Of a stretch of 36,043 nt of DNA, positions 5,267 to 35,030 are shown piece by piece. How positions within the stretch are numbered: position 1 is the first letter of the stretch; each line of letters starts with the position of its first letter. The DNA lies in the NCBI RefSeq assembly GCF_006345805.1, contig NW_021826234.1, positions 1 through 36,043 on the forward strand, read 5' to 3'. Under the pieces are notes generated by a model. That model saw nothing but the letters and a program-made list of their open reading frames with translations, was not told the DNA's origin and ran no database searches. Origin of the DNA: Octopus sinensis. Taxonomy: Eukaryota. Both the position numbers and the translations under genes were made by a program.

Positions 5267-7012
5267 TTATTCTGTTCTAAATTGTAATTTAATAATTAAT
5301 AACTTCAAATTTTTCCATTTCCTTACTGGGGGGTTTATTTTTTTCTTCTGGAGATTTTGGGGATTTTTGTTTGATTGATTCGTAGTGATTAAAGTTTTTT
5401 TGGCTTCCAAAAACTAAAGTTTCGCAAAACGTTCATACTTTATTTCTACTTTCCATTGCTTGCTTTATCCATAATAGCTCCATTGAGTCGTTTGAGTTTT
5501 GACTATTATTTGTTACTAAAATCAGAATTTATGAATACTTTGATTATATTTTAATTTGAAAGTTTCCAAAAATATATCTCCATGATTATCATCAGATGGA
5601 GATAAAAATGAATTGATTGCATTAATAAACAGTCTTAATTTATTTTTGATTTATTATTCTTAATTATTTGATTATTCTCAATCTGTTCAGTTTTTTCGTT
5701 TTCCTTTATTAATTCATCTTCTGTTTGAGTTGAGATTTCAGCGTGAAGTACAGTATTTGATGTTTTATCTTAATAATAAAATGGTATGGTGTGTGTCTGT
5801 CTGTCTGTCTGTGTGTCTGTCTGTCTGTCTGTGCACACCACATTCAAATTGTTACAAACCAGATCAAATTGTCAAAACCTTCCCTTTTGTAGTTATTCGA
5901 TAATGAGGCACAATAAAAGGTTGATATCCTCTAAGAACCTTCCTGTCAAAAAATTTAATAAGAAAGAATATCCTCGACGATGAGGTCCCCCAAAACCTTC
6001 AAGTCAAAAAATAAAAACAAATTATTTTCTGCGTTTTTTTTAAAATGAACAATAAGAAAGTCCTCGACTCACATGGTGTGGTCCCCCAAAACCTTCGAGC
6101 TCTTAATAATAAAATGGTATGGTGTTAAATTCCTTAGATCCATCTGGAATGCCGAATCATCTATTGAAATTAAAAATAGGTGTACCGGTTGTGTTACTCC
6201 GCAATCTTGCGCCACCTAAATTATGCAATGGTACAAGGTTGGTTATCAAGAATTTGATGGCTAACGTAATAGAAGCGACAATATTAACAGGTAATTACAG
6301 AGGTGAGGATGTTTATATCCCACGAATACCTCTGATTTCGGAAGAATTACCTTTTAGATTTAAGAGACTACAATTTCCGCTGAAGATAAGTTTTGCTATG
6401 ACAATAAACAAGGCCCAGGGACAGTCTTTAAAGGTAGTAGGCTTATTTTTAGAGAACGAGTGCTTTTCACATGGCCAGCTGTATGTGGGGTGCTCAAGGG
6501 TAGGTAGAAGAGAAAATTTATTTATATTTGCCAAGGATGGACGGACTGCAAACATCGTTTATCCACAGGCCTTAGAATAAGGTTATATCAAAGCAGGTCG
6601 CATTTATATATCTACATAAATTTATACTTATTTAAGGAAACTGCGAGCGTAGCGAGCAGGGCCTCCGCAGGAGCTAGCTCGCAGTGAGCGAAGCGAACTG
6701 CTGAGCTAGTTTGATATAACTGCCGTTTCTTCAAAATTAACATTTTCTGTCTTTTTAGAATTAACAATTTGATTAATTGGTTCTTGTGAATTTAAAATTA
6801 TTTTTGGAGTTGATAAGCAATTTTGGCCCCATTGGATCATGTAATTTGAATTTCCTTCTATTTCGTAAAATAATTCTTCATATTTTTTTCTTAACTTTTT
6901 AAATCTATTTCTCACCAAAAAAGATTTTAAAGTTCCCTGTCAAGTTTTACGTTATGGAAAATACATGTATTTGGTCATTTAAAATGTTGTTGTTTTTAAA
7001 ATCTTTTATCAT
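5267..7012 (-). CDS. IQCC: IQ domain-containing protein C orthologue, interrupted by Helitron A
   Basis: N-terminus [33 protein letters not shown] and C-terminus [23 protein letters not shown] match the two conserved IQCC blocks as recalled. Introns 6937-6964 (28 nt) and 5414-5438 (25 nt). The frame is restored across the empty Helitron site. One unexplained frameshift near 5640-5660. Start and stop positions approximate. Confidence 0.75.
5790..5833 (+). repeat. (GTCT)n microsatellite near Helitron 5' end (second copy about 33050-33095)
   Basis: Direct reading. Confidence 0.9.
6119..6580 (+). pseudogene. Helitron Rep/Hel PIF1-type helicase C-terminal fragment
   Basis: [29 protein letters not shown] and [13 protein letters not shown] motifs. 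N-terminal helicase motifs and Rep domain absent. Confidence 0.9.
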
Positions 7013-7379
7013 CACAGTGAGTTTAACATTTCCTTGACGACATAAAATATTTTCTGATGATTTTTTCTTAAAATATTTTTTTTTTCTTAAAAAAATATTT
7101 CTTATATTTTTATTAAAAGTTGTTTGGCTATTTAATTACAAACTTTTTAGTATTTTAGCTCTAAATTTTTGGAAATACAAAAAGAAACCCAATCAAATGC
7201 AGTAACTTTAAAAAATATTAATTTCTCGAAAATTCAAAACCCATATGTTTTCTATAATAAAAATTGAAATGTTTGTGTACCATTTAGAACTTTACTGATT
7301 AACTGACAGACTTTAAAAAGTAAAGGAAAACGATGAAACCTTTTGTAACAACAAAAACATAATTCTTCATTTATTCAAG

Positions 7380-7495
7380 GCAGAGGTTGTTGCTTTGCTC
7401 TTTAAAGAACTTCGGATCAACATATGCATGTGAAACTGTTTTCAGCAAACTTACGAAAATACAAACTAAGTGTTGAAATTGATTAATGAACACTT
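7380..7495 (+). pseudogene. hAT transposase C-terminal dimerisation-domain remnant
   Basis: FGSTYACETVFSKLTKIQTK followed by a degenerate RNRL-x-EHL with two TGA stops. Confidence 0.7.
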
Positions 7496-7575
7496 TATTC
7501 AACTTTTATGGATATTTTCTTCTAAATTTATTCATTGTTATAACATATAATGTGAAAGACCTAAAAGACCTAAAA

Positions 7576-8187
7576 ATGCTGTACACCCAATTCGCCTACG
7601 TCCTCATATCCGTGGGCCTCTTCATCACGGGGGTCTGTCTCTATTGGGCATTCTGGGGACACTCAAAGGCAGCCGAGTGATCCTCCTCGTCTATTCCTTA
7701 TTGCTGTTTGTCATTTTAATGTTTGTGGTCATCTCCACTATCCTCCTGGCCGTCTACGAGACCGAGGTGGTGGCTCAAATCAAACACTTTCTCCAAAATA
7801 GTCTCCAAGAACGCTACACGGGGGACTCCTCTCACATTTCACCAAGGCCTGGGACTTTTTGCAGTCCAATTTGAAATGTTGTGGAGTAATGAACTACACT
7901 GACTTTAACCAAACCACCAGCTGGACTGTCCGGTACTCCCCTCTTGCCATTTTGCCTGCCAGTTGTTGTTCCACGGAGGACAAGACCCTCCTGACTGAAT
8001 GCACGGAAAACCACAATTTGTATGTGTCGAATGCTAATGTGGGGTGTCTGGGGAGGGGTTGGTGAATTTGGTTAAACAATATGGAGGGGTCACTCTTGCC
8101 ACAATCATTGCCATTTGTTGTGGACTCCTCCTCATGATGCTCTCCGCCTCCTATCTAACCATTCAAGCATATTCACAAGATAAATAA
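7576..8187 (+). pseudogene. Tetraspanin, 5'-truncated, three frameshifts
   Basis: TM2-TM3 hydrophobic segments, large extracellular loop with CCG, PASCC and GC motifs, TM4, TAA at 8185-8187. TM1 missing. No intron recognised. Confidence 0.85.
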
Positions 8188-8238
8188 CATTTACTAATTC
8201 TAATCAATATTATTCTCACTATATTCTAGTGAGTTACG

Positions 8239-9062
8239 GATGGTACAGAGATCCCTACTTTTGTATTTGAAGGGGCTGTCGGAATGTTCTGTCTTCATGG
8301 AATTTACACAAACAACCCAAAGTTCTACCGAGGACTCCTAATGCCTTGTTTGAGCAAAATACTGGAGCCAGAGACCAGTCATAAAGTGGCCATTCGATTA
8401 GCCTCCACAGGACTATTACATTCGAGCACTCCCAAGGACACGCTTGTACTCAATATTCACACAATCACCAGAAATTGTCACTGTGGGGTACCCAATTTGA
8501 CAGTCCTCTCGGATTGGCTGCAGGATTTGACAAAAACGGGGAGGCAATCGACGGGCTTCTCAACTGGGGGTTTTCCTTGTGGAAGTTGGGAGTGTGACCC
8601 CCCTCCCTCAACGCGGCAACCCCAAACCAAGGATATTTCGACTCCCCAAGTCCGAGTCCGTCATAAAAACGGTAAAAATAACGAGTCACTCAGATACGGA
8701 CTCCCCAACGACGGTGCTCAAGCTTTGGCCGATCGACTACAATCACACCACCCAAACAGTGCCATCCTGTGTTTACCGTAGAGAAGGGATATGTCGGAGT
8801 CAACGTCTGCAAAAACAACGAAATGCCCTCCTCACTTCAGTCTGACTTGATAACCTGTCTCCGTCAATTTGTGGACAGGGTGGACTATATCGTCTTCAAT
8901 ATATCATGTTCTAATGTGACTGATTCCTCCACTTCTGAGGACTTGATGACTGTCTTGCAGGCGGTGTACTGTCACCTGAGTAGTCCATAGGTGGTCAAAG
9001 AACGTGACTCCTTGGTGGAGGACAGGGTGGTCCCTATTTGGCTCAAGATATCCCCAGACTTG
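8239..9062 (+). pseudogene. DHODH: Class 2 (mitochondrial) dihydroorotate dehydrogenase, 3'-truncated, with four micro-introns
   Basis: Spliced translation gives [63 protein letters not shown] and WLKISPDL. Introns 8446-8471, 8672-8693, 8759-8781, 8964-8990. 1-bp frameshifts near 8570 and 8665. Homology stops abruptly at about 9062. Confidence 0.9.
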
Positions 9063-9099
9063 TTCTTTAATACAATATTTTCACCGGTTTGCAACTGAA

Positions 9100-9139
9100 C
9101 TGTTTATTGCCCCGAGTTAAAAAGGTTGAGAACCGTGTG
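9100..9139. mobile_element. Degenerate hAT-like terminal inverted repeat (right end)
   Basis: GCCCCGAGTTAAAAAGGTTGAGAACCGTG; reverse complement resembles CAGNGGTTCTCAACC and the 3425 terminus. No TSD found. Confidence 0.5.
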
Positions 9140-9164
9140 TTTTAATTAATGAAAACTTTATTTC

Positions 9165-11400
9165 ACAGCATTTTATTCGCCATTACGGTCAGCATGAGTT
9201 GCAGTTTATTGATCTGTAATGAATCCATACCAAATGTTTAACAAGTTCTTTTTGTTCCCGGTAAGGATAATGACACAGTTTCTTTAGAAAAACAAATTAT
9301 GAAATGAAGACTGTCCCTAAAAAATCTGTTGTAAACCTACTATGAGAATATTGAAATATACATTGTTGGCTGGAAGATATTGTGAAAGAGACAATAGAGT
9401 GAATTATTCAAAATACTTAATAATTAGCTTATGACTAAGTTTTGGTGAACAAAATAACATTTTATTGTCAAAATATGATCGTTACAGCGTTAGAGAACTG
9501 AATTCATCTTTAAATGCGTTTAAATTGATGTAGTAAAGATTTTTGCAAAATACAAATTTTTAATAAACATAAATATTGGATCAAAAATCGATTTCTATAT
9601 TAAAACATTAAACAAATATTAATGTTTCTATTGTAGCAAAATATTTTTAAACACGTTGGTGAAAATAAATTTTTGCTTGCAAAAATAAGTACATGTATTA
9701 AATATGCAGACGTTGGATGCATTCGGTAAACAGTGAACTTTTGGTAGAAACAGTTTTTCATTGGCAGCAAAATTAAGTTACCGACAAATAGGGATAATTT
9801 TAATTTAGACAAAGATACTTCAATAATCTTTCAAAAAACTATCTTTATTGTCGTCAAATAAATATTTTTGATCTCATTTAAATGTTATACAAATTATTTC
9901 AAATACAAATAAAAAGCAACATCTGCCGCCATCCTTTATCAAGCAATATTCTCTGTAAAAATATATAATTATAATGATTATAATGATTAAGGTCAAATGA
10001 GATACTATCCTTTTCATTAATTTTCTTTTCCGAAAGACGTGTAAAAATAAATACAAATTCAAACAAAGAGGTCCTTGGAAGCAACGACTGCAACAACGAC
10101 TACACAGAGATAACGTAGCACAAACACCGAAGAAGCATATGATGGGTTAATTCACTTACAATGGAATTAAACCAAAAGATATATTGTTAGCAAGACATGA
10201 CAGAAGTGTTAAACATATCAATCGTGCCATATATAAACGCAGTTCCTGAAGAAAAACAGTGTCCTAATAGGAATCAAATGAATTTAATGTCTTTCTTTTT
10301 GTCAAATAAATATTTTTTTTAATTTCATTTAACTGTTATAATGTTATAAGGAAAAATTTCAACAACGAATAAAATGAAACATTGTGGCAATTCACCATCA
10401 AGGAATATACTCAGTACGAATTAAATCCACAAATCGAAAATCAAAACTCCTTTAGAACAAATGTGCGTGTGAATACAGTAATGGTGACACTGACTTGCAG
10501 CAGCAAAAGAACACATTTTGTAGGAATTTCTCTGTATATATTTTTTGCGCGTTGTAAATTTAAATTCAAAATATCTCTTAAAAAATAAATAATTAAAAAA
10601 AGGGATACGAGTTTACTCTCCGAGAATTACAAATTTAAAAAAATTGGAGAAATTATAAAACCGGTTTTTTTGAACTCATTGTATATGTTATTCTTTTGCT
10701 GATCGCAAAATTTCTCGAAAGATACTTCGTTGAAATAAAAAAAAGACAAGAAACGAATACACCAATTGTGCCTTATCTTACGCTATCCTGCGTAAAGCTC
10801 CAGAAACTATTTCTGAAAAGTACCACACAATCAATTTTAGTATTGTTTTCAATTAAATTTAAATTCAAATTATTTGACAATATATTACTTTATTTGTACT
10901 TAGAACAGATAAGCCAAAAAATAAATACTGGGAATCAAACAATACAACTGTTTTATTTTATGAAATGAAAATTCGGCATAGAATAAAGTATAGCAAACAT
11001 TAATTAATAATCATTAAGTAATGTTGATTCAAAAAAATAGAAAAATAAATTAAAAAATGTCTGAAAAATAAAATTATACATAACATTTAGAATCGATTTG
11101 ACGATTGGAATTTAAAAAATTAGGTCATCAAAAAAAGTCATCAAAGTGAATAAAATAATATATTATTAAATCATAAACTAAGGAATAATACATATCACAA
11201 TATTGTAAAAACAAACTCATAACCAACAATTTTTTTTAATTCATGGAAGGTTCTGAGCAAATATCAATATGCATAAAGTCCTTGAATAGAAATAATAATA
11301 ATTATGAATAAAAAATTAATATTTGCAGCAAAATAAGAACAACAAAAGAACGTGCGACTCGTCATAATTAATTAAAAGTGTGAATTTATAAATTTTTAGG
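9165..11400 (-). other. Probable exons of an unidentified, possibly decayed multi-pass membrane protein gene or genes
   Basis: Hydrophobic open segments (SSVFVLRYLCVVVVAVVASKDLFV; KCVLLLLQVSVTITVF; FLDGELPQCFILFVVEIFP) and a degenerate internal repeat (about 9850-9930 vs 10300-10395). No consistent model built. Confidence 0.25.
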
Positions 11401-13995
11401 TTTACCATTTAATAAATTAAACGATAATAATATAATTTAAATTTCTTAAATCCATGTATAAGAATCATGATAGTTTGAACAAAAATTTAATATTATTTCT
11501 AGGCACATGACTGTGAAAAGTCGCATTAAGTGGGGAAATAGTGATTGTTGCCAAAGCAAAATTCGGGAGGAGGCCCGTGGCATATGATTTCTGATTGGTG
11601 AGAATTAAAATCAGAAGTTTTCTACAGAAAAATCTTGCCAATATTAAGAGCGTAGTGGGGTCAACTGTTGAGGTTTATAAATGAACTGTCATTTAGTTGT
11701 GTGCTCAGATTAAAAATATCCAATTGATTCTAAGCAATCCAAAGAAATCTACGAGGAAAGTAGCAGGAAAAAGTCAACAAAGACCTTTGCGGGCTTAACA
11801 GGAGACGGCTCAAAGAGGAGATATGAAAGTTGGCAAGTAATAGTCTGTACTCTTTCATCAAGAAAAGAAAGTACCCAGACAAATGGTCTTACATGAGGAT
11901 CAAGTTCAGAAAAAAAAAGTGTTAAACACTTCACATACATCACTTGCCAAATCTAAATCGTGAAATTTTGACAGGAATGGTTTTATGTCGAAGAAAACCC
12001 ACATGGCTACAGATTATGTTGTTTGGAAATATAATATCTAAACCTGCTTAGACATAAAACTAAGGATGCTAAAGGAAATGCAAAAAACTTTAACAAAAAC
12101 GAATCTACAAGAATCAGTTTTTTTGTGCTATGCTACTGCCCGAGAGAACCACTGCGAAAGCAAGTTAAGCAAATTCTCTTCGAATATAACCACCTAAAAC
12201 GATTTGACAATATCTCTAATACATAAATGAAGGAAAAAAGATATACTGTTAAAATTATTAACACATAGCTCACATTTTTAAAATATCAGTTGAATTTTCT
12301 GAATTCTTTAAAAGAACTAAAATAGGAAAAACAATAAAAATTGATCAAATGAATCATATAATTAGTTATTAACTCACAAAAAATTATATTTTATTCTTTT
12401 TGAAAAAAATAGCTCATTAAAAACATGAAAAAACAGTTTTTTAATGATTTTCAGGAATTCAATTTAAATTAGATGACCCAAATAAAAGAATATAATTTTG
12501 AAATTTGAGATTTTATTGTGATTTTCAGTTTTTAATAATCTACCTGAGTCTTTCAACCAGTTTGATATTTTTTTGACTTCTAATTCTAACTACATAAGAT
12601 TTTTTAAGAAAATAATTTTGGCTAAAGTTTCGTTTTTTCTTTTTAAGATTTTCAGGAATCCAATTCAAATTAGATGACCCGAATTTCCAAAATTCGAAAT
12701 TTCATAACGATTTTCAGTTTTTGATAATTTATTAGGCCCTTTCTACAAGTTCGATATTTTTTAAAACAAAAATTTTGTTTGAAGTTTCGTAGTTTTCTTT
12801 TAACTTTTTTGAGATATAAACTTTAGAGGCACTTAATAAATCTATTTCCCATTCTTAGGACCTACAAAGCTATACAATCTTTGTTATTACCTGATAAATC
12901 CATATTTTAGATTTATAATTTTAAACTGAAATAAGAGTGGGATTCCTTTTCGTATGATGTGATCGAGTCGTAAAGATTGATAAAGATATATTCAAGTCTA
13001 TTTAACTTTTGGATTGCTAATCTTTCACGAGTTGGATTTAATTGGTCTGGTTTTATTGCAAAAGAAACAACTTTCCAGCTAGAATCAAATCTCGTCAACG
13101 TTCCCTGGCCGTAGACCGATGAGTCCTTTTGGTATGATACAGTTGAAAAATGGAATCTTTTTATCCTTAATCAACTAATTTAGCGTGGATTTATCTGTTC
13201 CACCAAGTCAGTTGGATCTCGAAACGCCCAGGAGGAACCTAATACCCACATCAAAAGAACCTCTACCCATGGGAGATCCTCGTACCAGGACGATATACTT
13301 TCATAGAACCAAACCATCCCAGACAAAATTCCCAAGTCCATAAAAATGCTGCAAACCGATTAGCCGCCAGATACGGTTTTGTGTGGACTCGTAGGAAGAT
13401 TACCAAACAAGGATGAGGTCGCTTTCAAAGTGCAACATAATCACAGATTAATTAGTTCCATTATAACGTGTCTTGGTGACATAATAAATAAAATAAAAAT
13501 TCCTTTTAGCCATTTAATTAGCAAAAAGAGTTGAATTGTATTTATTAGAGGATTTACAGAGAAGATGGGAGGAAGATTCGTGGAGTCTCCCCTTTTTGAA
13601 TATAAAAGTGCAATCTACATTATTATTTTATTAAATATAAAATAATATTTCCGACATAAAAGATATTGATAAAATTCTCTGAAGTTTAGGGATTGAGCAA
13701 CCTACTTCCCATCATCGATGTCGAGTTTAATTTGTAAATCTCAATTTTTTATTTAATAAATGTGATAGGATTTTTTAATTATCAACTTATTAAAGAATTT
13801 TATTTTTTAAATAAAATCTAGAAATTAAACAGTTTAATGAATAAATCTAAAAATTACTCTCTGAAAAATATCAAAACCTTCTCATTTGAAGTGGTACAAT
13901 TGGTTCTTCTGCATTTCCAATAAAATTATATAATTCAGAAAAAGAATTTAAAAACTTTACTTTTTGAAGAAATTTAGAACTTTAATAAAAATAAA

Positions 13996-14520
13996 TTAAC
14001 AAAAAACCTTATAAATAATTTTAAACACGAATAGAAGAATCTTGTTATTATTTTTGGATAGATTATATATAAAGTAACTATTTTCTTTTTTATCCTGGTC
14101 ATAAAAAAATACAAATAACATTCTCTCTATTTTTAAATGAGCCTGTTGTAACCAATAAAACGGAGGAGGAAGATGTGCTGATGTGTTAGGGTATTGACAA
14201 TAAACAATAATCATTTTTAAAATTTTCTCTAAAGCCTTGGAAATATAAAAAAGATGAAAAACCGGGAAATAAGAAAATAGAAACATAATATTCAAAAATT
14301 GCTATCCCCATCGCATAAAAGTAATCTCCATTTGTAAAAAGAAACGATTCGTTCGAAAAATCATACACTTTTGCAACATTGGCACATATAAATTCTAAAT
14401 AATGAAACATGCACAGTTGTATGAGAAATATTCCAAATAGTATATGCTTTGACCAAAATAGTACAAAAAAGAGCCCAATGGACAAAACTAATCCCAAAAT
14501 CGTTGAGTTTTTATAGTCTA
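13996..14520 (-). pseudogene. ICMT: Isoprenylcysteine carboxyl methyltransferase-like, N-terminal half only
   Basis: LCMFHYLEF..ESFL..YFYAMGIAIFEY..LFP matches the ICMT N-terminal transmembrane region as recalled. Frameshift near 14235. The catalytic RHPxY region was not found downstream. Confidence 0.55.
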
Positions 14521-14973
14521 CAAAAATTGAATTAAAAATGAAACGTTTTTATTTCAGAATAATTATTTTGAGGTCCATTTTTTAGGATAAAATAACCGAA
14601 ATTGTGTCAAAGAAAATTAAAAATGCCAAATAAGCATTCTTGAGGTAAAAAATAAGTATAATTGAAGAGCCTAATAAAAAAGAAATCAATGAGAATATTA
14701 ATGAAGTATTGTGGAAATCGTTCTAATTTTTTATTATAAATAAAAAAACGTTAAAAATCATTTCTGGTCAGTCCACAAGAAGTGATAATCTGGTATTTAG
14801 AATTTATTTATCAAACACGATTTCATTTTAATTTGAAATAAATTTTAATAATATTATAGTATTGAATAATTTATTACCAACATAAAACTAATCAACGTAG
14901 AGCCCTATAGATTTCTACAACCAGTATATAGAATATTTAATTTATAAATTGGAATAAAAGATTTATTTATTAG

Positions 14974-15600
14974 GAATCTGTAGTTCGTTATGTGCAACTT
15001 CTTTCTGATAGTGTCGATGTTTTCTCTTTTCAAAAGAGTGTTAATGATCATCTTATCTTACGAGCAGGGGAATCCCTTATTTGGACATTTACTCTGCTAG
15101 AAAGTGTTGGATCGAATGAGCCCAAAGTAGAGGAATTACGGAATCGACTAATCGACCTCATCAACAAATCTCTGATTCCCCTCAACGCATATTCCACGTG
15201 TTATAATAAATATATCAACCTCGCCAACTCGGACATTGTGGCAATGATCGAGTTTCATTAACCGTGCTTACTAGTTCAAGGAAATACGACCAGGAACAAA
15301 AGACCGCCGTGGAAATACGGAACACTATCGAAGCCTTGATAAGTTACCGAGCACAGATTGAGAAGGAAATGCCCAACTCGATCATTATTGCGTGCTACTA
15401 CATAAATACGGAAAATCTCAGTGTGTTTAGTTTATAAGACACTGACGAGAGCTGGTGAGTCATGTGGTCGAAGAATGTGTAGGGACTCTGTCCACCACGG
15501 GACATTTCACCAACTTTATTTTCTCAATAGATCTATGTAGTTGGGAAAAGCCAGATTGCTAGATAAAGTGCGGAGTGGCCACTACGTTCCCATCGAGTTA
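14974..15600 (+). pseudogene. DNAH1: Internal fragment of an axonemal dynein heavy chain (DNAH1-like stem)
   Basis: LLESVGSNEPKVEELR..LIPLNAY..KYINLANSDI, a 23-nt intron at 15252-15274, then EMPNSIIIACYYINTENL. Degenerates with stops after about 15430. Confidence 0.75.
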
Positions 15601-16192
15601 TCTTCCTTGTTATGTGGCCTGTTGGGTAACAAAGAAAAGTACAGAAGAGGGGAAATAATCCTGTGGTAAATAAGAGTGATTAAGTTAATGCGTTTGCTCT
15701 CAGTCAATTTTCTTCCTTTTCGAGCCAGCGCTTGGCTCTGCGGTCATTCTCAGTTTGATGGGCACACTCGGCAAAGCTTACTCCGTTGTTCCGTTTATAA
15801 ACCAATCCATTAGGGATTCTTCCGGCCGGACCATTTCAAACTTATGTTTTGCACATATATTCTCCAATGTTCTCCAGATAACCACTCTAAACTATATTAA
15901 CTCGTCATTCGTTTTTGAGAATTGGTTGTTTAACACTTTTTAATTAGTCTAAACTATTAACATTTGATTCATCGCTAATTTCATTATTTGGATTTTCTCA
16001 CACTTTCTATTGCTTAGTTAAGACCTCTCACACTTTATTTTTTATGTAAATGGCTTTAAAAGGAATAATCTGAGATGTAATTTTTTTAATGCTTACATTA
16101 TCTGGAAATTCATCATGTGTATTTTTTGAGTTTATTCCTATAATCTGTTTATATATTAAAATTTTCGGTTTTGCGAATTGGTTTGTTTATCG

Positions 16193-20795: not shown

Positions 20796-23700
20796 TTTTT
20801 TTTTTTCAATGTAATTAAATGTGATAAAGTTAGTTAGAGGACTTCCCCGCTTCGTAGATGGAGAAACAGTTACCTCGTACGATGGCAAGGGAAATCCTCT
20901 GAAGGAGCCAGCCCGTCTCGCGTGTGTCATTTCTCTTCAGAGAGATCAGACGTCCGAGCTTATAGAGGAAAGTCAAAGACTTTTCCCCAATGACCCCTGA
21001 AGTCTCGACAGCAACAGGGGCGAATAGATATCGCTCCGAGAGTTCTCTATATTTCGCAATCTTAAGCTTTTCTGTTCTAAGGGACACCGAACCGGCTGAG
21101 ACGGCTGACAAGGGAAGATTAGGTTCAGAGAAAGTATCTGAACATGTCGCGTCCCAAATCAGCGACTTGCCGAACTCAAAGGAGAAGATGGATAGACCGT
21201 CAGGTCTTTTTCCGTCTCCCCTAGCAAGCCCGGCCGGTTCTAGGATTGATGAAATTCCGGCAGCGATGAAACCCCTCAAGACGACGTCATTTAAGGCTGT
21301 GTGGCGTGGTGCCCGCCCAGCACTGCGTCTGCAGGAAAGAGAGTGTAGTCCGTGCTGGTCGATCATGGCCCCACAGCGGCACTTGTGAATTTCACAGATC
21401 TTCAAACCGAGACGCAGAGAAATAGCGACTCTGAGACAGTCGCCGTCTAGTAGTGTCCCGATGTTCGGTAGGGGAAGGGCGTCAAGCCAGGCCCCACTGC
21501 CCGGACTGCAGCCCGCACGAAGACAGGCCAGCCTGTGCTGATCGAAACTCTGAAGCAAGACAGAGGAGAGAGTGTCACAAGTGATCGAATCCCACTGACC
21601 CTGGACGGATGGGTCGGCAGGTCTTTTGGTATACGCAGAATCCCAAAGGTCCAGAGCGGCCACGTGATCAACTGACACTTTTCGTTCGGGAAGGTTTCTG
21701 AGAACGATGTCAGTGAGGGCACGGGATGATGCCAGGGACGAGAGGAAGGCAGGAAGAGCCAGATAAACGGGCGAACGAAGGCCAATCCCCCCGAGATTAA
21801 CAGGCAGGGAAGATTGAAGCCACCCCAGAGCGTCGAAATGGATGTTGCACAGATACTCGGCTCCAGACTTCAAGATAGAATCGATATCGGATAACAGATT
21901 AGGCATGCGAAAACAAGGAGAACTCCTTAGGGTGTACAAAAGCCTCGGAGTAGAGAAATAGTTACGCAGAAGAAAGAAACCCGACGTGGGCATCAATGAG
22001 GAAAAGCCGTTCGATCATGTTTGACAGATTGCTTGCCTTGGCGATGAGCGTTTGTGAGAGGGCCTCGTGACCAATTGGCGAACCAAGGATTACAAGGTCC
22101 TTTGTTTCTGATACCCGCGCGCCTTTTAGAATAGGTTCCAGGGCGTCCAGAGTTTCGGCAAAAAAATCGGAAGGAATATTCAGATTTAGGACTTCGGACT
22201 TGCTTGAGTTTATCTCCAGACCGATGGATGAAAGGGCCGGGATAATGCTCCGCAGGTCGTCTAAGACAGAGCGGGGAGGTCCACAAATCGTCGCGTCGTC
22301 CAAGTACCACATATTTACCGGAGAGCGGACAGAATGAGCGACGGAGTTGACACACATAGCAAATAGGAAACGCCCCAGGGGATCTCCCTGTTGCACTCCG
22401 GTCGATGAGACGATAAAGGAATCGCCAAACAGGAGGAGGCTGGGTTGTGAGTACGAAAGGTGGACCAGAGGATAAGCGGAGGGGGCGAGAGAAAGGCAGG
22501 TCTCGAGCAAATGATCCCGTCTCACTGTGTTAAACGCATTTGATATGTCCAGTTTAACTAAAAGATATTCCAATGAAGAATCCATAAGTTCTCTTACGGC
22601 ATAGGCAGCCGATTCACACCCTCCACTGACGCCGACGCCCAATTGGACTGGCAAAAATTTCGGGACCAACTCGGGGATCACAACGTGGCAAACGAGCTTT
22701 CCGGCCAATTTGCGGAAAACATTACCCACGGCGATCGGCCTGACCCCGTTATCTTTTTTACCCAAAGCAGTGAGATTAGCCGAGAAGAAAATCGCCCGGG
22801 CAAAATCCGGTAAATTCCCACCGATAAGACGGTTACAGAGATTGGTGATAGATTCCAAGAGGAGACGGCCTGCCTCAGCAGTAAGAGGTGAAGTCAAGTC
22901 TTTAATGTGTCCGGGCTTCAGCCCATCTATACCCCCACTGCTGCTTGGGGAAAAACTTTTCAGTGCCTTCTCAACCTGTGAAGCGGTAACCAGCAGTTGC
23001 GGAAGGGCGGTCGTATCGATAGCGGGTTCGGTGCGGGAGTTTACTGGAAGACTGGGGTGCTTGGATCTCAAATTAGCCGAAACGGAAGGAGATGGGGACA
23101 AAAGCCGGTTAGAGGAGGCAACAAGTCTGACAGCTCCACGGACATCGCCATCCAACAGCTTGCTGTTCACCTTACGACGGAGGTAAATGCAATCGGAGGA
23201 AGTTTTAATGTTAACCACAAAGGGCGACACATTTGTGAGAGTCAGAGTGGAGGGAATCGAACTGGGAGGGAAACAGAGAAGTACAATGATCGAATAGGGC
23301 GAGTTGCTGTTTAATAATCGATGCGGGATAAAGTTTTTTAGACTCGCTGTCGGGCCGGGAGGGTTGGATCCCAATACCGAAAACAGCAAAACCAAAAAGG
23401 AGTAACCAGTCAGACTGGTCATTAGATGACAAAGCGCGGTTTATAGCTGTGGACAAAGAGAGAGCAGCTTGAATCCTCGCTGCCTTCGGTATCCGTGCCG
23501 GAATTTGGCGGTTACGGCGAGAAGAATAGATGAATCTTAAAGCATCTTCGGCTGACGGAGATGGACTTTCAGCAGGGATTTCCGGCGGACTGTTGGCCGG
23601 GACCGGCCTGCAAGAACGACAAACAGGGCATTTCCAGATTATGAGAGAAGCTAAAACGCGCCTGGAAAGTCGAACACACGAAAGGTGGAAGAAACTGTTG

Positions 23701-24020
23701 CAGCCAGAACAGTATCTACCTTTCTTCCGATCGTTGCTAGTTTTGCACGAAGAGCAAATAGCCATCGTAGGAAAGAAATAGAAAAGAAAGATGGAAAGGT
23801 ATAAAAAAGAAATAGAAAAGAAAGATGAACAGAAAGAAATGAAATAAAGAAATGAAGAGATAGAAGGACAAATAAAATGAAAGAAAAGAAATGATAGATG
23901 GAGAGATAAAATGAAAGAAAAAGATAAGATAGGTTGACAAAAATACTGACTATTTGAGTTGTTTATGACCAATGAGGATTGTTAATATTCTGACCAACAA
24001 GGACCAACAACGACCACGTT
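20796..24020 (-). mobile_element. CRE-like non-LTR retrotransposon (RT + restriction-like endonuclease), near full length
   Basis: Poly(A) tail (T11 at 20796-20806), about 50% GC, pyrimidine-rich 5' leader. 5' end approximate. No TSD found. Confidence 0.85.
20830..23765 (-). pseudogene. Single ORF of the CRE-like element: PHD finger - RT - CCHC - RLE, two frameshifts
   Basis: C4HC3 PHD (CSSC..CSGC..HLSC..WKCPVC). RT motifs GVRPIAVG, KLDISNAFN, QQGDPLG, WYLDD. CRCG..H..SC, RH, KRPDG..WDAT endonuclease. Frameshifts near 23250 and 21980. Confidence 0.88.
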
Positions 24021-29397: not shown

Positions 29398-30649
29398 CTA
29401 TCTAATATTCAGTGATTTTTTATTTGTGATATCAAGGGCGATTGTCCTTGGCCGCATTCATTTCCATTAACATCGTCAAAATCTAAAGTCCACACAAACA
29501 TCCCTGCTAGTCCATTATCTTTCACATATTTTGCCTACAAGGTAAAGCAAAATTTATTTCTCTTTTCTTTAATACTTCTGATACTTTCATATCACAACCA
29601 ATGATAGTCCTTAACTCCATGAGAAGCTTTTTGCTTATCGTCCCAAACTTCATTATAACCTTGATTAGAATACTAAAAATTTTTTTAGATAAAAAGTATC
29701 TTTATATATGCTAGAATTCCCGATTCTTTTGTTATTGGTCCTTCGCTAGGTCCCCCAACGATTTATCTCCAATTTTTGGATTTTTTGATTTAGTTTTGAA
29801 TCCTTGTCCGTAGGTTGGTAACCCGATGAGTAGTTTTGACTTTGGAGCACCGTGCTTAGACCAATATCTGACTACATAATCCTGTAAATTTAGAGTTTAT
29901 TTAATCTGAGTACCGTGTTGAAAGTATCAGCATCGTTTATTCCATATAATCCTGTATGATGGCCAACAGTGTTCGAAAATTGACCGTAAAAATCATAAGT
30001 CATTAAGTTGATGTAATCAAGGTATCTAATTGTCAAAATGTAAATATTTAACCTAGAAATTTCTTTTATTTCATATGAAACCTGAATTGTCGAAACTCCT
30101 GCTGAAACAGCTGCTGTCAACAAATATCTTTTTGAGCCTTTTTGAAATTCTGTGCTCATAGTTTTCAAAAGTCGACTGTACGCTTGTTTTTGATTGTGAG
30201 GAAATTCCCAATCAATGTCAAATCCGTCAAAATTGTATTTCTTTAAAAAGTCTTTTGTATTTTTAGCAAATGTTTTTGCATTAGAGTCGCTTCTTGATAC
30301 AATCGTAAATTCATTGAGCAGTGTGTTCCACCCTCCGACAGAAAGCAGGATTTTCAAACGAGGATTCAAACGTTTAAGAGAAGTGATTCTATGAAAATCG
30401 TTATATTGACCTAATATAGATGTAAAAAATTACCTCCAGGCAAGTCAGACCAATTGTCATTTGAAATAATAGAAAGATTATTTACATCAATGGTGCAGAA
30501 TGCATATATTATATGCGTACAGAGGTTTGCTAAATGGCTGTCATCAAATTCAAACCCCCCTGGCCTGTATTTCGCCCAATTTGTATAATAGCAGAATAAT
30601 ACTGTAATAATTATTCATTTTTTATACTACCTTTAGATTCCACTGACAT
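29398..30649 (-). pseudogene. GH18 chitinase with intact 5' half and damaged 3' half
   Basis: CYYTNWAKYR, CTHIIYAF, LLSVGGW, catalytic DGFDIDWEFP, INLMTYD, WTLDFDD. Introns 30602-30630, 30411-30433, 30026-30052, 29882-29913. Frameshift at 29752-29756, TGA at 29592-29594, two expected introns lacking GT. No signal peptide or chitin-binding domain seen. Confidence 0.9.
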
Positions 30650-32815: not shown

Positions 32816-33052
32816 CGATATTTTTTAATTGATTGTATTGCAATTAATACAGCTCCCAATTCCGCGATTATATGTCAAATTATTGATAACGTCATTCGCA
32901 AACTCAATGTTGATAGGAAAAATTTTTATTTACTTATTTCTGATGCTGCTTCATATATGGTTTCTTCTGGAAAAGTATTAAAGCAATTATATTCAAATCT
33001 ATTTCATGTCACTTGTGTGGCGCATTTCTTAATAATAAAATGGTATGGTGTG

Positions 33053-33091
<39 letters not shown>

Positions 33092-33129
33092 GTGTGCACA
33101 CCAACTTCAAATTGGCAAAGTAAAGATAA

Positions 33130-33600
33130 ATTCCCCCCAAAAAAAATTTTCTGCATTTTGGTTAAAATGAACAACTACGATGTCCTCGACTTACATGATG
33201 AGGTCCTTAAAACCTTCCCCCCAAAAAAAATTAAAAAAAAAATTTTCTGCATTTTGGTTAAAATGAACAACTACGATGTCCTCGACTTACATGATGAGGT
33301 CCTTAAAACCTTCCCCCCAAAAAAAATTAAAAAAAAATTTTCTGCATTTTGGTTAAAATGAACAACTACGATGTCCTCGACTTACATGATGAGGTCCTTA
33401 AAACCTTCCCCCCAAAAAAAATTAAAAAAAAATTTTCTGCATTTTGGTTAAAATGAACAACTACGATGTCCTCGACTTACATGATGAGGTCCTTAAAACC
33501 TTTCCGCCAAAAAATCAAAAAATTATTTTCTGCATTTGATTAAAATGAACAACGTTAATGTCCTCGACATTCATGATGAGGTCCATTAAAACCTTCGAGG
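33130..33600 (+). repeat. About 95-bp minisatellite, about 5 units, inside Helitron B
   Basis: Unit core GGTTAAAATGAACAACTACGATGTCCTCGACTTACATGATGAGGTCCTTAAAACC at about 33160, 33256, 33351, 33446, plus a diverged fifth unit. Diverged units also in Helitron A (about 5950-6100). Confidence 0.92.
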
Positions 33601-34320: not shown

Positions 34321-34574
34321 GTGGTTTGTCTAATCAAGGTCACTAAGCTAAATCTCCGGACTATAAAGGCTTTTAAGCATTATCTTAATTGGCTGTTAAA
34401 AAAATTAGACAGGTTGTTGCCGTGGCGGCAGAGATTTTTTTTGTTTATACTATTTTACAAATTTTTAAAGTTTTTTTTTTGTTTTTTTTATTTTTTTGTT
34501 TTTAAATTATTTATTTTATATTTGTTTTTTTTATTTTTTTTGTTATTTTCTAAAAATTCAACCGGATTGAATTT

Positions 34575-35030
34575 TTAAACTCCTTAGATCCCTCTGGAAT
34601 GCGGAATCATCTTTTAAAGTTAAAGATAGGCGTTCCAGTGGTTTTATTACGAAATCTTGCGCCACCTAAATTATGCAACGGAACGAGGTTAGTTATCAAA
34701 AATTTGATGGCTAACGTAATAGAGGCGACGATATTAACAGGTAAGTATAGAGGTGAGGATGTTTATATTTCACGAATTCCGATAATTACTGATGAATTAC
34801 CATTTAGATTTAAAAGGCTGCAATTTCCTTTGAAGATGAGTTTTGCAATGACAATAAACAAGGCCCAGGGACAGTCATTAAAGGTAGTTGGGTTATTTTT
34901 AGAGAGTGAGTGCTTTTCACATGGACAGCTGTATGTGGGATGCTCGAGGGTAGGCAGAAGAGAAAATTTATTCATATATGCCAAGGAAGGACGGACGACA
35001 AACATCGTTTATCAACAGGCGATAGAATAG
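34575..35030 (+). pseudogene. Helitron PIF1-type helicase C-terminal fragment (second copy)
   Basis: 130/143 aa identical to the 6119-6580 fragment by manual alignment. Confidence 0.9.

Follow-up and report, generated by a model that had tools for sequence, protein, structure and literature searches.

Introns of the length considered here, 22–32 nucleotides (nt), have been recorded in two groups of animals only, the dicyemids and the myxobolid myxozoans (PMC13644364). One dicyemid, Dicyema japonicum, inhabits the renal sacs of Octopus sinensis and has a genome of 67.5 Mb, with 36.7% GC and 49% repeats (PMC6736024). Gene-fragment duplication, compositional heterogeneity and the contamination of host assemblies by parasite DNA are all of already known kinds, and it is against these that the locus described below has to be set. 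We analysed contig C2705 of the assembly of O. sinensis, the East Asian common octopus (GCA_006345805.1 in the literature; 2.72 Gb in 13,516 contigs), the whole of which, 36,043 bp, is referred to here as the window, and we focus on a 1.5-kb GC-rich island within it that carries parts of a tetraspanin gene and of DHODH. Our sequence comparisons support the view that the window belongs to a dicyemid-type parasite, whose DNA was assembled together with that of the host. The island itself most probably arose by a recent intragenomic duplication, at the level of DNA, of fragments of the parasite's own genes into AT-rich duplicated DNA, and not by import.

The GC profile of the window reaches 39–50% at 7501–9000 against 20–31% around it; the island as delimited here has 47.2% GC and its 1-kb flanks have 27.5% and 26.8%. 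A second GC-rich block at about 15000–15900 (40–44% GC, with 24% and 32% on either side) contains a piece of DNAH1, the gene for axonemal dynein heavy chain 1. A scan of the window against Rfam returned no match, so the GC-rich blocks are not ribosomal RNA. The island is matched four times in the assembly, namely in the window, in C12604 (the same locus), in C9480 and in C8697. C9480 holds the only intact tetraspanin-DHODH locus in the assembly. Its tetraspanin is a complete intronless open reading frame (ORF) of 265 amino acids with all four transmembrane segments (Pfam PF00335, 1.7e-37), and its DHODH covers the whole PF01180 model (positions 5–290) and has seven GT-AG introns of 22–27 nt. 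The island and this locus are 98.66% identical (20 substitutions in 1493 bp and a few indels, including one of 6 bp), they are collinear through four introns and the 52-bp spacer between the two genes, and the 3′ end of the island is exactly the boundary between exon 5 and intron 5 of the donor DHODH. Since the spacer and the four introns are kept, the island is a copy of genomic DNA and not of mRNA. The introns of the window copy lie at 8446–8471 (38% GC), 8672–8693 (36%), 8759–8781 (52%) and 8964–8990 (48%), and the initial annotation, which had put those at 8759 and 8964 at about 50% GC, was accurate on this point. A retrocopy, or processed pseudogene, was considered and is ruled out by the retention of these same four introns.

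The copy differs from its source in ways that bear on its state and age. Conserved DHODH positions are replaced in it (for example a proline by a serine, turning SCPN into SCSN), and the differences between copy and donor lean towards AT in the copy (9 versus 2, unpolarised, p = 0.065). The tetraspanin, which had earlier been taken for a micro-intron gene, is intronless; the breaks in its frame in the window are indels of 1–2 bp (+2, −1 and +2 bp) that are missing from C12604, in which a 202-amino-acid ORF is intact, and from C9480, and they are therefore probably errors of unpolished long reads. The fourth copy (C8697:508001-518000) is 90% identical; its tetraspanin ORF is open, its DHODH lacks about 1 kb internally, and the 5′ end of a retrotransposon follows. 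It is an older, decayed duplicate, a paralog and not an ortholog, and the tetraspanin-DHODH locus has thus been duplicated more than once. Adjoining this paralog is a GC-rich gene with LRR and PDZ domains (LAP/Scribble-like), and C8697:498001-504000, next to the GC-rich gene block, reads as N. In other assemblies, no exact-sequence record was found for the donor tetraspanin, the truncated copy, the C8697 paralog or the chitinase of C12471.

The borders of the island carry most of what can be said about how it came to be where it is. On the left, AAGACCTAA is immediately followed by a second AAGACCTAA, after which the donor sequence runs on to the ATG; the filler, with the duplicate included, amounts to 19 nt. 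On the right, at 9063/9064, a single T is common to donor and target, a microhomology of 1 nt. C12471 provides the empty site: it joins the left flank (with the 22-mer 7524–7545 in addition to the stretch in the table) to the right flank by way of about 57 bp and has no island, and a small deletion of the target marks the insertion site. A search around the island revealed no terminal inverted repeat (TIR), target-site duplication (TSD) or poly-A at its borders, and the ORFs of the right flank contain no Pfam domain. Coordinates of the features discussed are collected in the following table.

Features of the window (positions from its first base; a dot means that no strand is given)
Feature	Position	Strand	Remarks
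AT-rich flank on the left, within a large duplicated segment	6860..7334	.	alignment to C12471; 7335–7545 rearranged relative to that copy
Left junction filler	7546..7564	.	10 nt without assigned origin, and 9 nt, AAGACCTAA, that repeat the first donor bases in tandem
Inserted GC-rich island, most probably a DNA-level copy of part of the parasite tetraspanin-DHODH locus	7565..9063	+	collinear with C9480; absent from the copy of the flank in C12471
5′-truncated intronless tetraspanin	7576..8187	+	begins at codon M62 of the 265-amino-acid donor ORF; first transmembrane segment missing
DHODH exons 1–5 with four micro-introns	8240..9063	+	PF01180 positions 5–172
Right AT-rich flank, same duplicated segment	9064..14852	.	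92–96% identity with C12471 and C12462
Internal DNAH1 fragment, two exons	14974..15418	+	23-nt intron 15252–15274; 40% GC, GC at third codon positions (GC3) 44%
Rest of the 41–44% GC block	15419..15900	.	no Pfam match; partly common to C12462
GC-rich (49.5%) non-long-terminal-repeat retrotransposon (long interspersed nuclear element, LINE), young family	20830..23981	-	composition comparison; ORFs
GH18 chitinase-like gene copy	29409..30618	-	Pfam PF00704, 2.2e-61; five introns of 23–32 nt

The same evidence allows us to weigh whether the island belongs to the genome at all, or whether reads from a gene locus were joined by mistake to reads from an AT-rich repeat, a chimeric assembly having been one of three options in the initial annotation. 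The state of the window gives some reason for caution. Its first 23,560 bases are the reverse complement of C12604:1-23585, that is, of the start of that contig, and within the island the two differ by one substitution and 10 indel columns in 1494 bp, so that the window looks like an unpolished overlapping contig that is redundant with C12604. As these differences are nearly all indels, the apparent frameshifts in the genes of the window should not be taken for biology. Poor polishing and redundancy could be expected of a mis-joined contig too, but C12604 reproduces both island junctions, the insert departs from the only possible source by the 20 substitutions and the 6-bp indel noted above, filler and a templated duplication stand at the junctions, and the DNAH1 piece occurs in a diverged second copy, 95% identical. 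An artefact of assembly is thus highly improbable.

A more serious alternative is that a transposon of the Helitron or Pack type, or something similar, captured the fragments and moved them, with no part played by break repair. There is material for such a process in the window, which holds remnants of a Helitron helicase (6113–6580 and 34554–35030) and many other pieces of transposable elements, and the DNAH1 piece does travel within a segment that is found in at least three places. The tetraspanin/DHODH island, however, has a single derived locus, shows neither TIR nor TSD nor any termini that can be recognised, and breaks up a segment that is uninterrupted at this point in its other copy; moreover, the repeated unit resembles a large segmental duplication that includes chitinase paralogs, and not a single element. 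We thus regard capture by a transposon as unlikely overall. It is a possibility for the older DNAH1 piece and is unsupported for the island.

With the duplication of the parasite's own genes as the preferred reading, the course of events may be pictured as follows. First of all, the parasite genome would carry its conserved genes as GC-rich islands (44–54% GC, GC3 55–62%) within AT-rich repeat DNA (20–30%). Second, 1.5 kb of its own tetraspanin-DHODH locus, with C9480 as the source, would have been copied as genomic DNA, recently enough for the two to have diverged by about 1.3%. Third, end joining would have placed the island in one of the copies of the AT-rich duplicated segment, an event that would have left the filler, the 9-mer duplicate and the small target deletion; end joining as the enzymatic route is what we infer from the anatomy of the junctions. 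The DNAH1 piece may be an older capture of the same kind that was later duplicated with its segment and has already become less GC-rich. Finally, the sharp steps in GC would then mark the borders of young inserts that keep the composition of their source genes.

Several observations weigh against this picture. The left junction is not that of a clean insertion, as about 190 bp (7335–7524) differ from the copy in C12471, so that the event was more complex or indels followed it. The right breakpoint is at precisely the 5′ splice site of intron 5 in the donor DHODH; this may be accidental, with a probability that we put at a few per cent, or may point to another mechanism. A decay towards AT with age is suggested by the nine AT-ward differences against two and by the intermediate GC of the DNAH1 piece, but the differences are unpolarised and the p-value is the 0.065 given above. 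A native parasite DNAH1 was not found; a HMMER search with the DNAH1 ORF over 1.84 billion representative proteins gave only short fragments of 40–55% identity. Duplication also leaves the AT-richness of the chitinase, in exons and introns alike, unexplained.

Finally, it is assumed that donor and copy come from one parasite species. One octopus can carry several dicyemid species, and copies of the locus that are 98.7% and 90% identical and lie on different contigs could in principle belong to different ones, in which case C9480 would represent a second, GC-richer donor and the island a horizontal transfer between co-infecting dicyemids. We consider this very unlikely. C9480 shows the same mosaic as the contigs of the window (repeats of 21–33% GC and genes of 43–52%), it has the only intact locus in the assembly and is thus the natural native source, and the version on C8697, 90% identical, has lost an internal part of its DHODH and is a decayed paralog. 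The initial annotation's proposal of import from another micro-intron genome, richer in GC, is accordingly not sustained: the intact source is 98.7% identical, and the conserved genes in the same set of contigs are GC-rich. The annotation had itself named near-identical native genes and a similar GC range among typical genes as grounds for abandoning the idea, and both were found for the tetraspanin/DHODH island.

Turning to the organism, introns of 22–32 nt occur in all the cellular genes that we modelled in the window and its sister contigs (22–27 nt in DHODH, 23 in DNAH1 and 23–32 in the chitinase). Queries with repeats of the window (the LINE, 20830–23440, and 9100–13100) gave scored matches on high-numbered unplaced contigs throughout and none on contigs of chromosome size. 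A second, different DHODH, with exons spread across 30 kb, lies on the chromosome-size contig C18 and is the host gene. Outside the octopus annotation, the closest named relative of the window chitinase is CLP1 of D. japonicum (A8CF43; 50% identity, E 5e-107), other taxa reaching at most 41%. A fragment of an axonemal dynein fits a ciliated dicyemid as well. The dicyemid guess of the initial annotation is thus supported by the introns, the distribution of the repeats and the chitinase, although the annotation had not recognised that an octopus assembly had taken the contig along. An origin of the island from the octopus DHODH was also considered and is ruled out by the kilobase-scale introns of the gene on C18. 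That the window is octopus nuclear DNA into which parasite DNA has been integrated, a parasite-to-host transfer, would agree with its presence in an O. sinensis assembly and with the annotation of its genes as octopus proteins; it is nevertheless the least probable of the readings considered here, given the absence of any scored repeat match on chromosome-size contigs, the micro-introns in every identifiable cellular gene on the contig, and the very different introns of the octopus DHODH.

The public O. sinensis assembly holds a number of dicyemid-type contigs, C9480, C12471, C12604, C8697 and C1794 among them, and some exceed 1 Mb (C1794). Their genes have entered NCBI and UniProt under octopus labels, such as 'tetraspanin-1-like', 'chitotriosidase-1-like' and 'chitinase-3-like protein 1' [Octopus sinensis]; the C9480 tetraspanin, on a contig of 120,016 bp, is 'tetraspanin-1-like [Octopus sinensis]' in NCBI. 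In the literature searched, we found no report of dicyemid contamination in this assembly, nor of base-composition classes or gene-fragment duplication in dicyemids.

How far the window holds two compositional classes of genes is a separate question. GC3 is 62% in the tetraspanin, 55% in DHODH, 44% in the DNAH1 piece and 30% in the chitinase. DHODH has 48.8% GC in its exons and 43.9% in its introns, while the corresponding values for the chitinase are 34.9% and, over five introns, 19.9%; intron GC differs between the two genes with p 9e-5 (Fisher, on intron base counts). The contrast in GC, GC3 and introns, which the initial annotation had noticed, is thus measured. Its AT-rich class had included an LRR gene with AT-rich introns, and no such gene was found in the window either by motif scans in six frames or by Pfam searches of ORFs, the latter directed at the ORFs of 9064–14973 and the LRR-like ORFs at 24–26 kb, with short ORFs at 16–18.6 and 24–29.4 kb left out. 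It is true that both GC-rich pieces, tetraspanin/DHODH and DNAH1, are truncated internal fragments, but a high GC content is not confined to pieces of cellular genes, since the LINE has 49.5% GC as well. The 52-bp spacer, though it lies between two GC-rich genes, has only 27% GC.

Conserved genes elsewhere in the parasite contigs have a similar composition. C9480 has an actin-family gene, a protein-kinase exon and a Sec6 homologue in DNA of 37–52% GC, and a coiled-coil gene of 45–47% upstream of the native tetraspanin; the LRR and PDZ gene of C8697 is set in DNA of 47–54% GC. Across C9480, C8697, C12604 and the window, GC-rich gene blocks (44–54%) alternate with repeat DNA of 20–33% GC every 1–10 kb. 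Conserved genes of this parasite are thus normally GC-rich, and because those on sister contigs are as GC-rich as the island, import is not needed to explain 45–50% GC. A further option of the initial annotation, copying from a GC-rich gene-dense compartment into an AT-rich one, stands in its first half, since the donor, the empty site and the junctions argue for the copying of GC-rich genes into AT-rich repeat DNA, and falls in its second, as an alternation every 1–10 kb leaves no compartments.

The chitinase is the AT-rich member of the comparison. The family to which it belongs includes three or more other paralogs, on small contigs annotated as octopus, C12471 among them. The window copy has an in-frame TGA where D. 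japonicum has a conserved glycine (in WLGYE), a frameshift in a run of G, and two introns that lack the GT donor; a pseudogene is the probable reading. Its exons are long and open, which implies that AT-richness was a feature of the family when it still functioned. RefSeq models of the family (P0051-P0054) translate an in-frame 27-nt intron as 'LNIYILTIR', which the D. japonicum CLP1 (A8CF43) does not have, and the RefSeq model of the window chitinase omits two exons and so avoids the in-frame TGA and the frameshift; between intron read-through and skipped exons, micro-introns are being mis-annotated. One could propose on this basis that the parasite has two native classes of genes, conserved housekeeping genes (GC3 55–62%, introns of about 40% GC) and lineage-expanded families that lie among repeats, the chitinase-like one being an example (about 30% and about 20%). 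This proposal draws on a few conserved genes that are GC-rich and on a single family that is AT-rich, and we put it forward tentatively, as a possibility that is rather doubtful. If it were true, the two classes would form a fine-grained 'two-speed' architecture of the kind described for filamentous plant pathogens and not for an animal parasite, and young gene-fragment inserts would serve as visible tracers of a drift towards AT in the repeat fraction. Should the split between AT-rich and GC-rich intact genes hold genome-wide, this highly reduced animal would be a useful system for the study of mutation bias and gene conversion.

The DNAH1 piece was correctly named in the initial annotation. 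Its spliced ORFs (14974–15251 and 15275–15418) match residues 714–813 of human DNAH1 (phmmer against the PDB, 8j07_g6, E 3.7e-16), and the three best PDB matches are all DNAH1 chains (E 3.7e-16 to 6.4e-14), with other dynein heavy chains at E of 0.1 or above. C12462 shares the block from 15167 onward, with about 95% identity, and the piece was thus captured before that segment was duplicated. Further GC-richer patches (41–45% GC) lie inside the duplicated segment at 13180–13440, which is partly deleted in C12471, and at 15419–15900, and these may be older captured fragments. On the minus strand, at 13996–14722, in the part shared with C12471 and C12462, are AT-rich ORFs (26% GC) for a protein resembling a multi-pass membrane protein, with no Pfam match; they may represent another AT-rich micro-intron gene.

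Among the repeats, the LINE has a GC3 of 53–55%, long open ORFs for the reverse transcriptase and the C-terminal part, and upstream an ORF with a PHD-like zinc finger. Its copies are 95–99% identical and lie on unplaced contigs only, many of them, so that it looks like a recently active family. The two Helitron helicase remnants are about 93% identical at the protein level, and microsatellites of the (GTCT)n type ('CLSVCLSV' when translated), at about 5900–6100, 33050–33150 and 34500, adjoin such truncated remnants.

Our understanding of this locus thus changes in its emphasis: the tempting claim of gene import between parasites is removed, and what is left is ordinary duplication against a strong but native compositional heterogeneity. 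Parasite genes that are passed on as octopus proteins can mislead comparative work on cephalopods. At the same time, the long-read dicyemid contigs are a ready resource on a repeat-rich dicyemid genome, including its micro-introns, which RefSeq models in part read through as coding.

Comparison with known systems places the island more precisely. First of all, like processed pseudogenes, it is a non-functional extra copy of housekeeping genes away from the parent locus; unlike them, it has kept its introns and comprises two adjacent genes copied together with their spacer, and it has no poly-A, so that it was not mediated by RNA. Second, Helitron and Pack-MULE capture likewise yields internal pieces of unrelated genes in repeated AT-rich DNA, and the DNAH1 piece exists in several copies as such captures do; here, however, no element termini were found, and the island is single-copy at a derived locus, where it interrupts a repeated unit. 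Third, isochores and 'two-speed' genomes offer a parallel for the contrast between conserved genes with GC3 of 55–62% and a multi-copy, repeat-embedded chitinase-like family at about 30%, with introns that follow the class of the gene, but the parasite contigs alternate every 1–10 kb and have no long uniform domains, the spacer between two GC-rich genes is AT-rich, and one AT-rich family has been sampled. As a case of parasite contamination of a host assembly, with parasite contigs left unplaced and their genes annotated as those of the host, the window has no unusual feature. Finally, the closest likeness is to ectopic duplication in the repair of double-strand breaks, known from 'filler DNA' and templated insertions. 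The window departs from such cases in the additional rearranged stretch of about 190 bp at its left junction, and the pathway is here read from the anatomy of the junctions. It agrees with them in the genomic copy with introns and spacer, the truncation of both genes and the empty site, and equally in the filler, the short templated duplication, the microhomology of about 1 nt, the small target deletion and the lack of transposon hallmarks.

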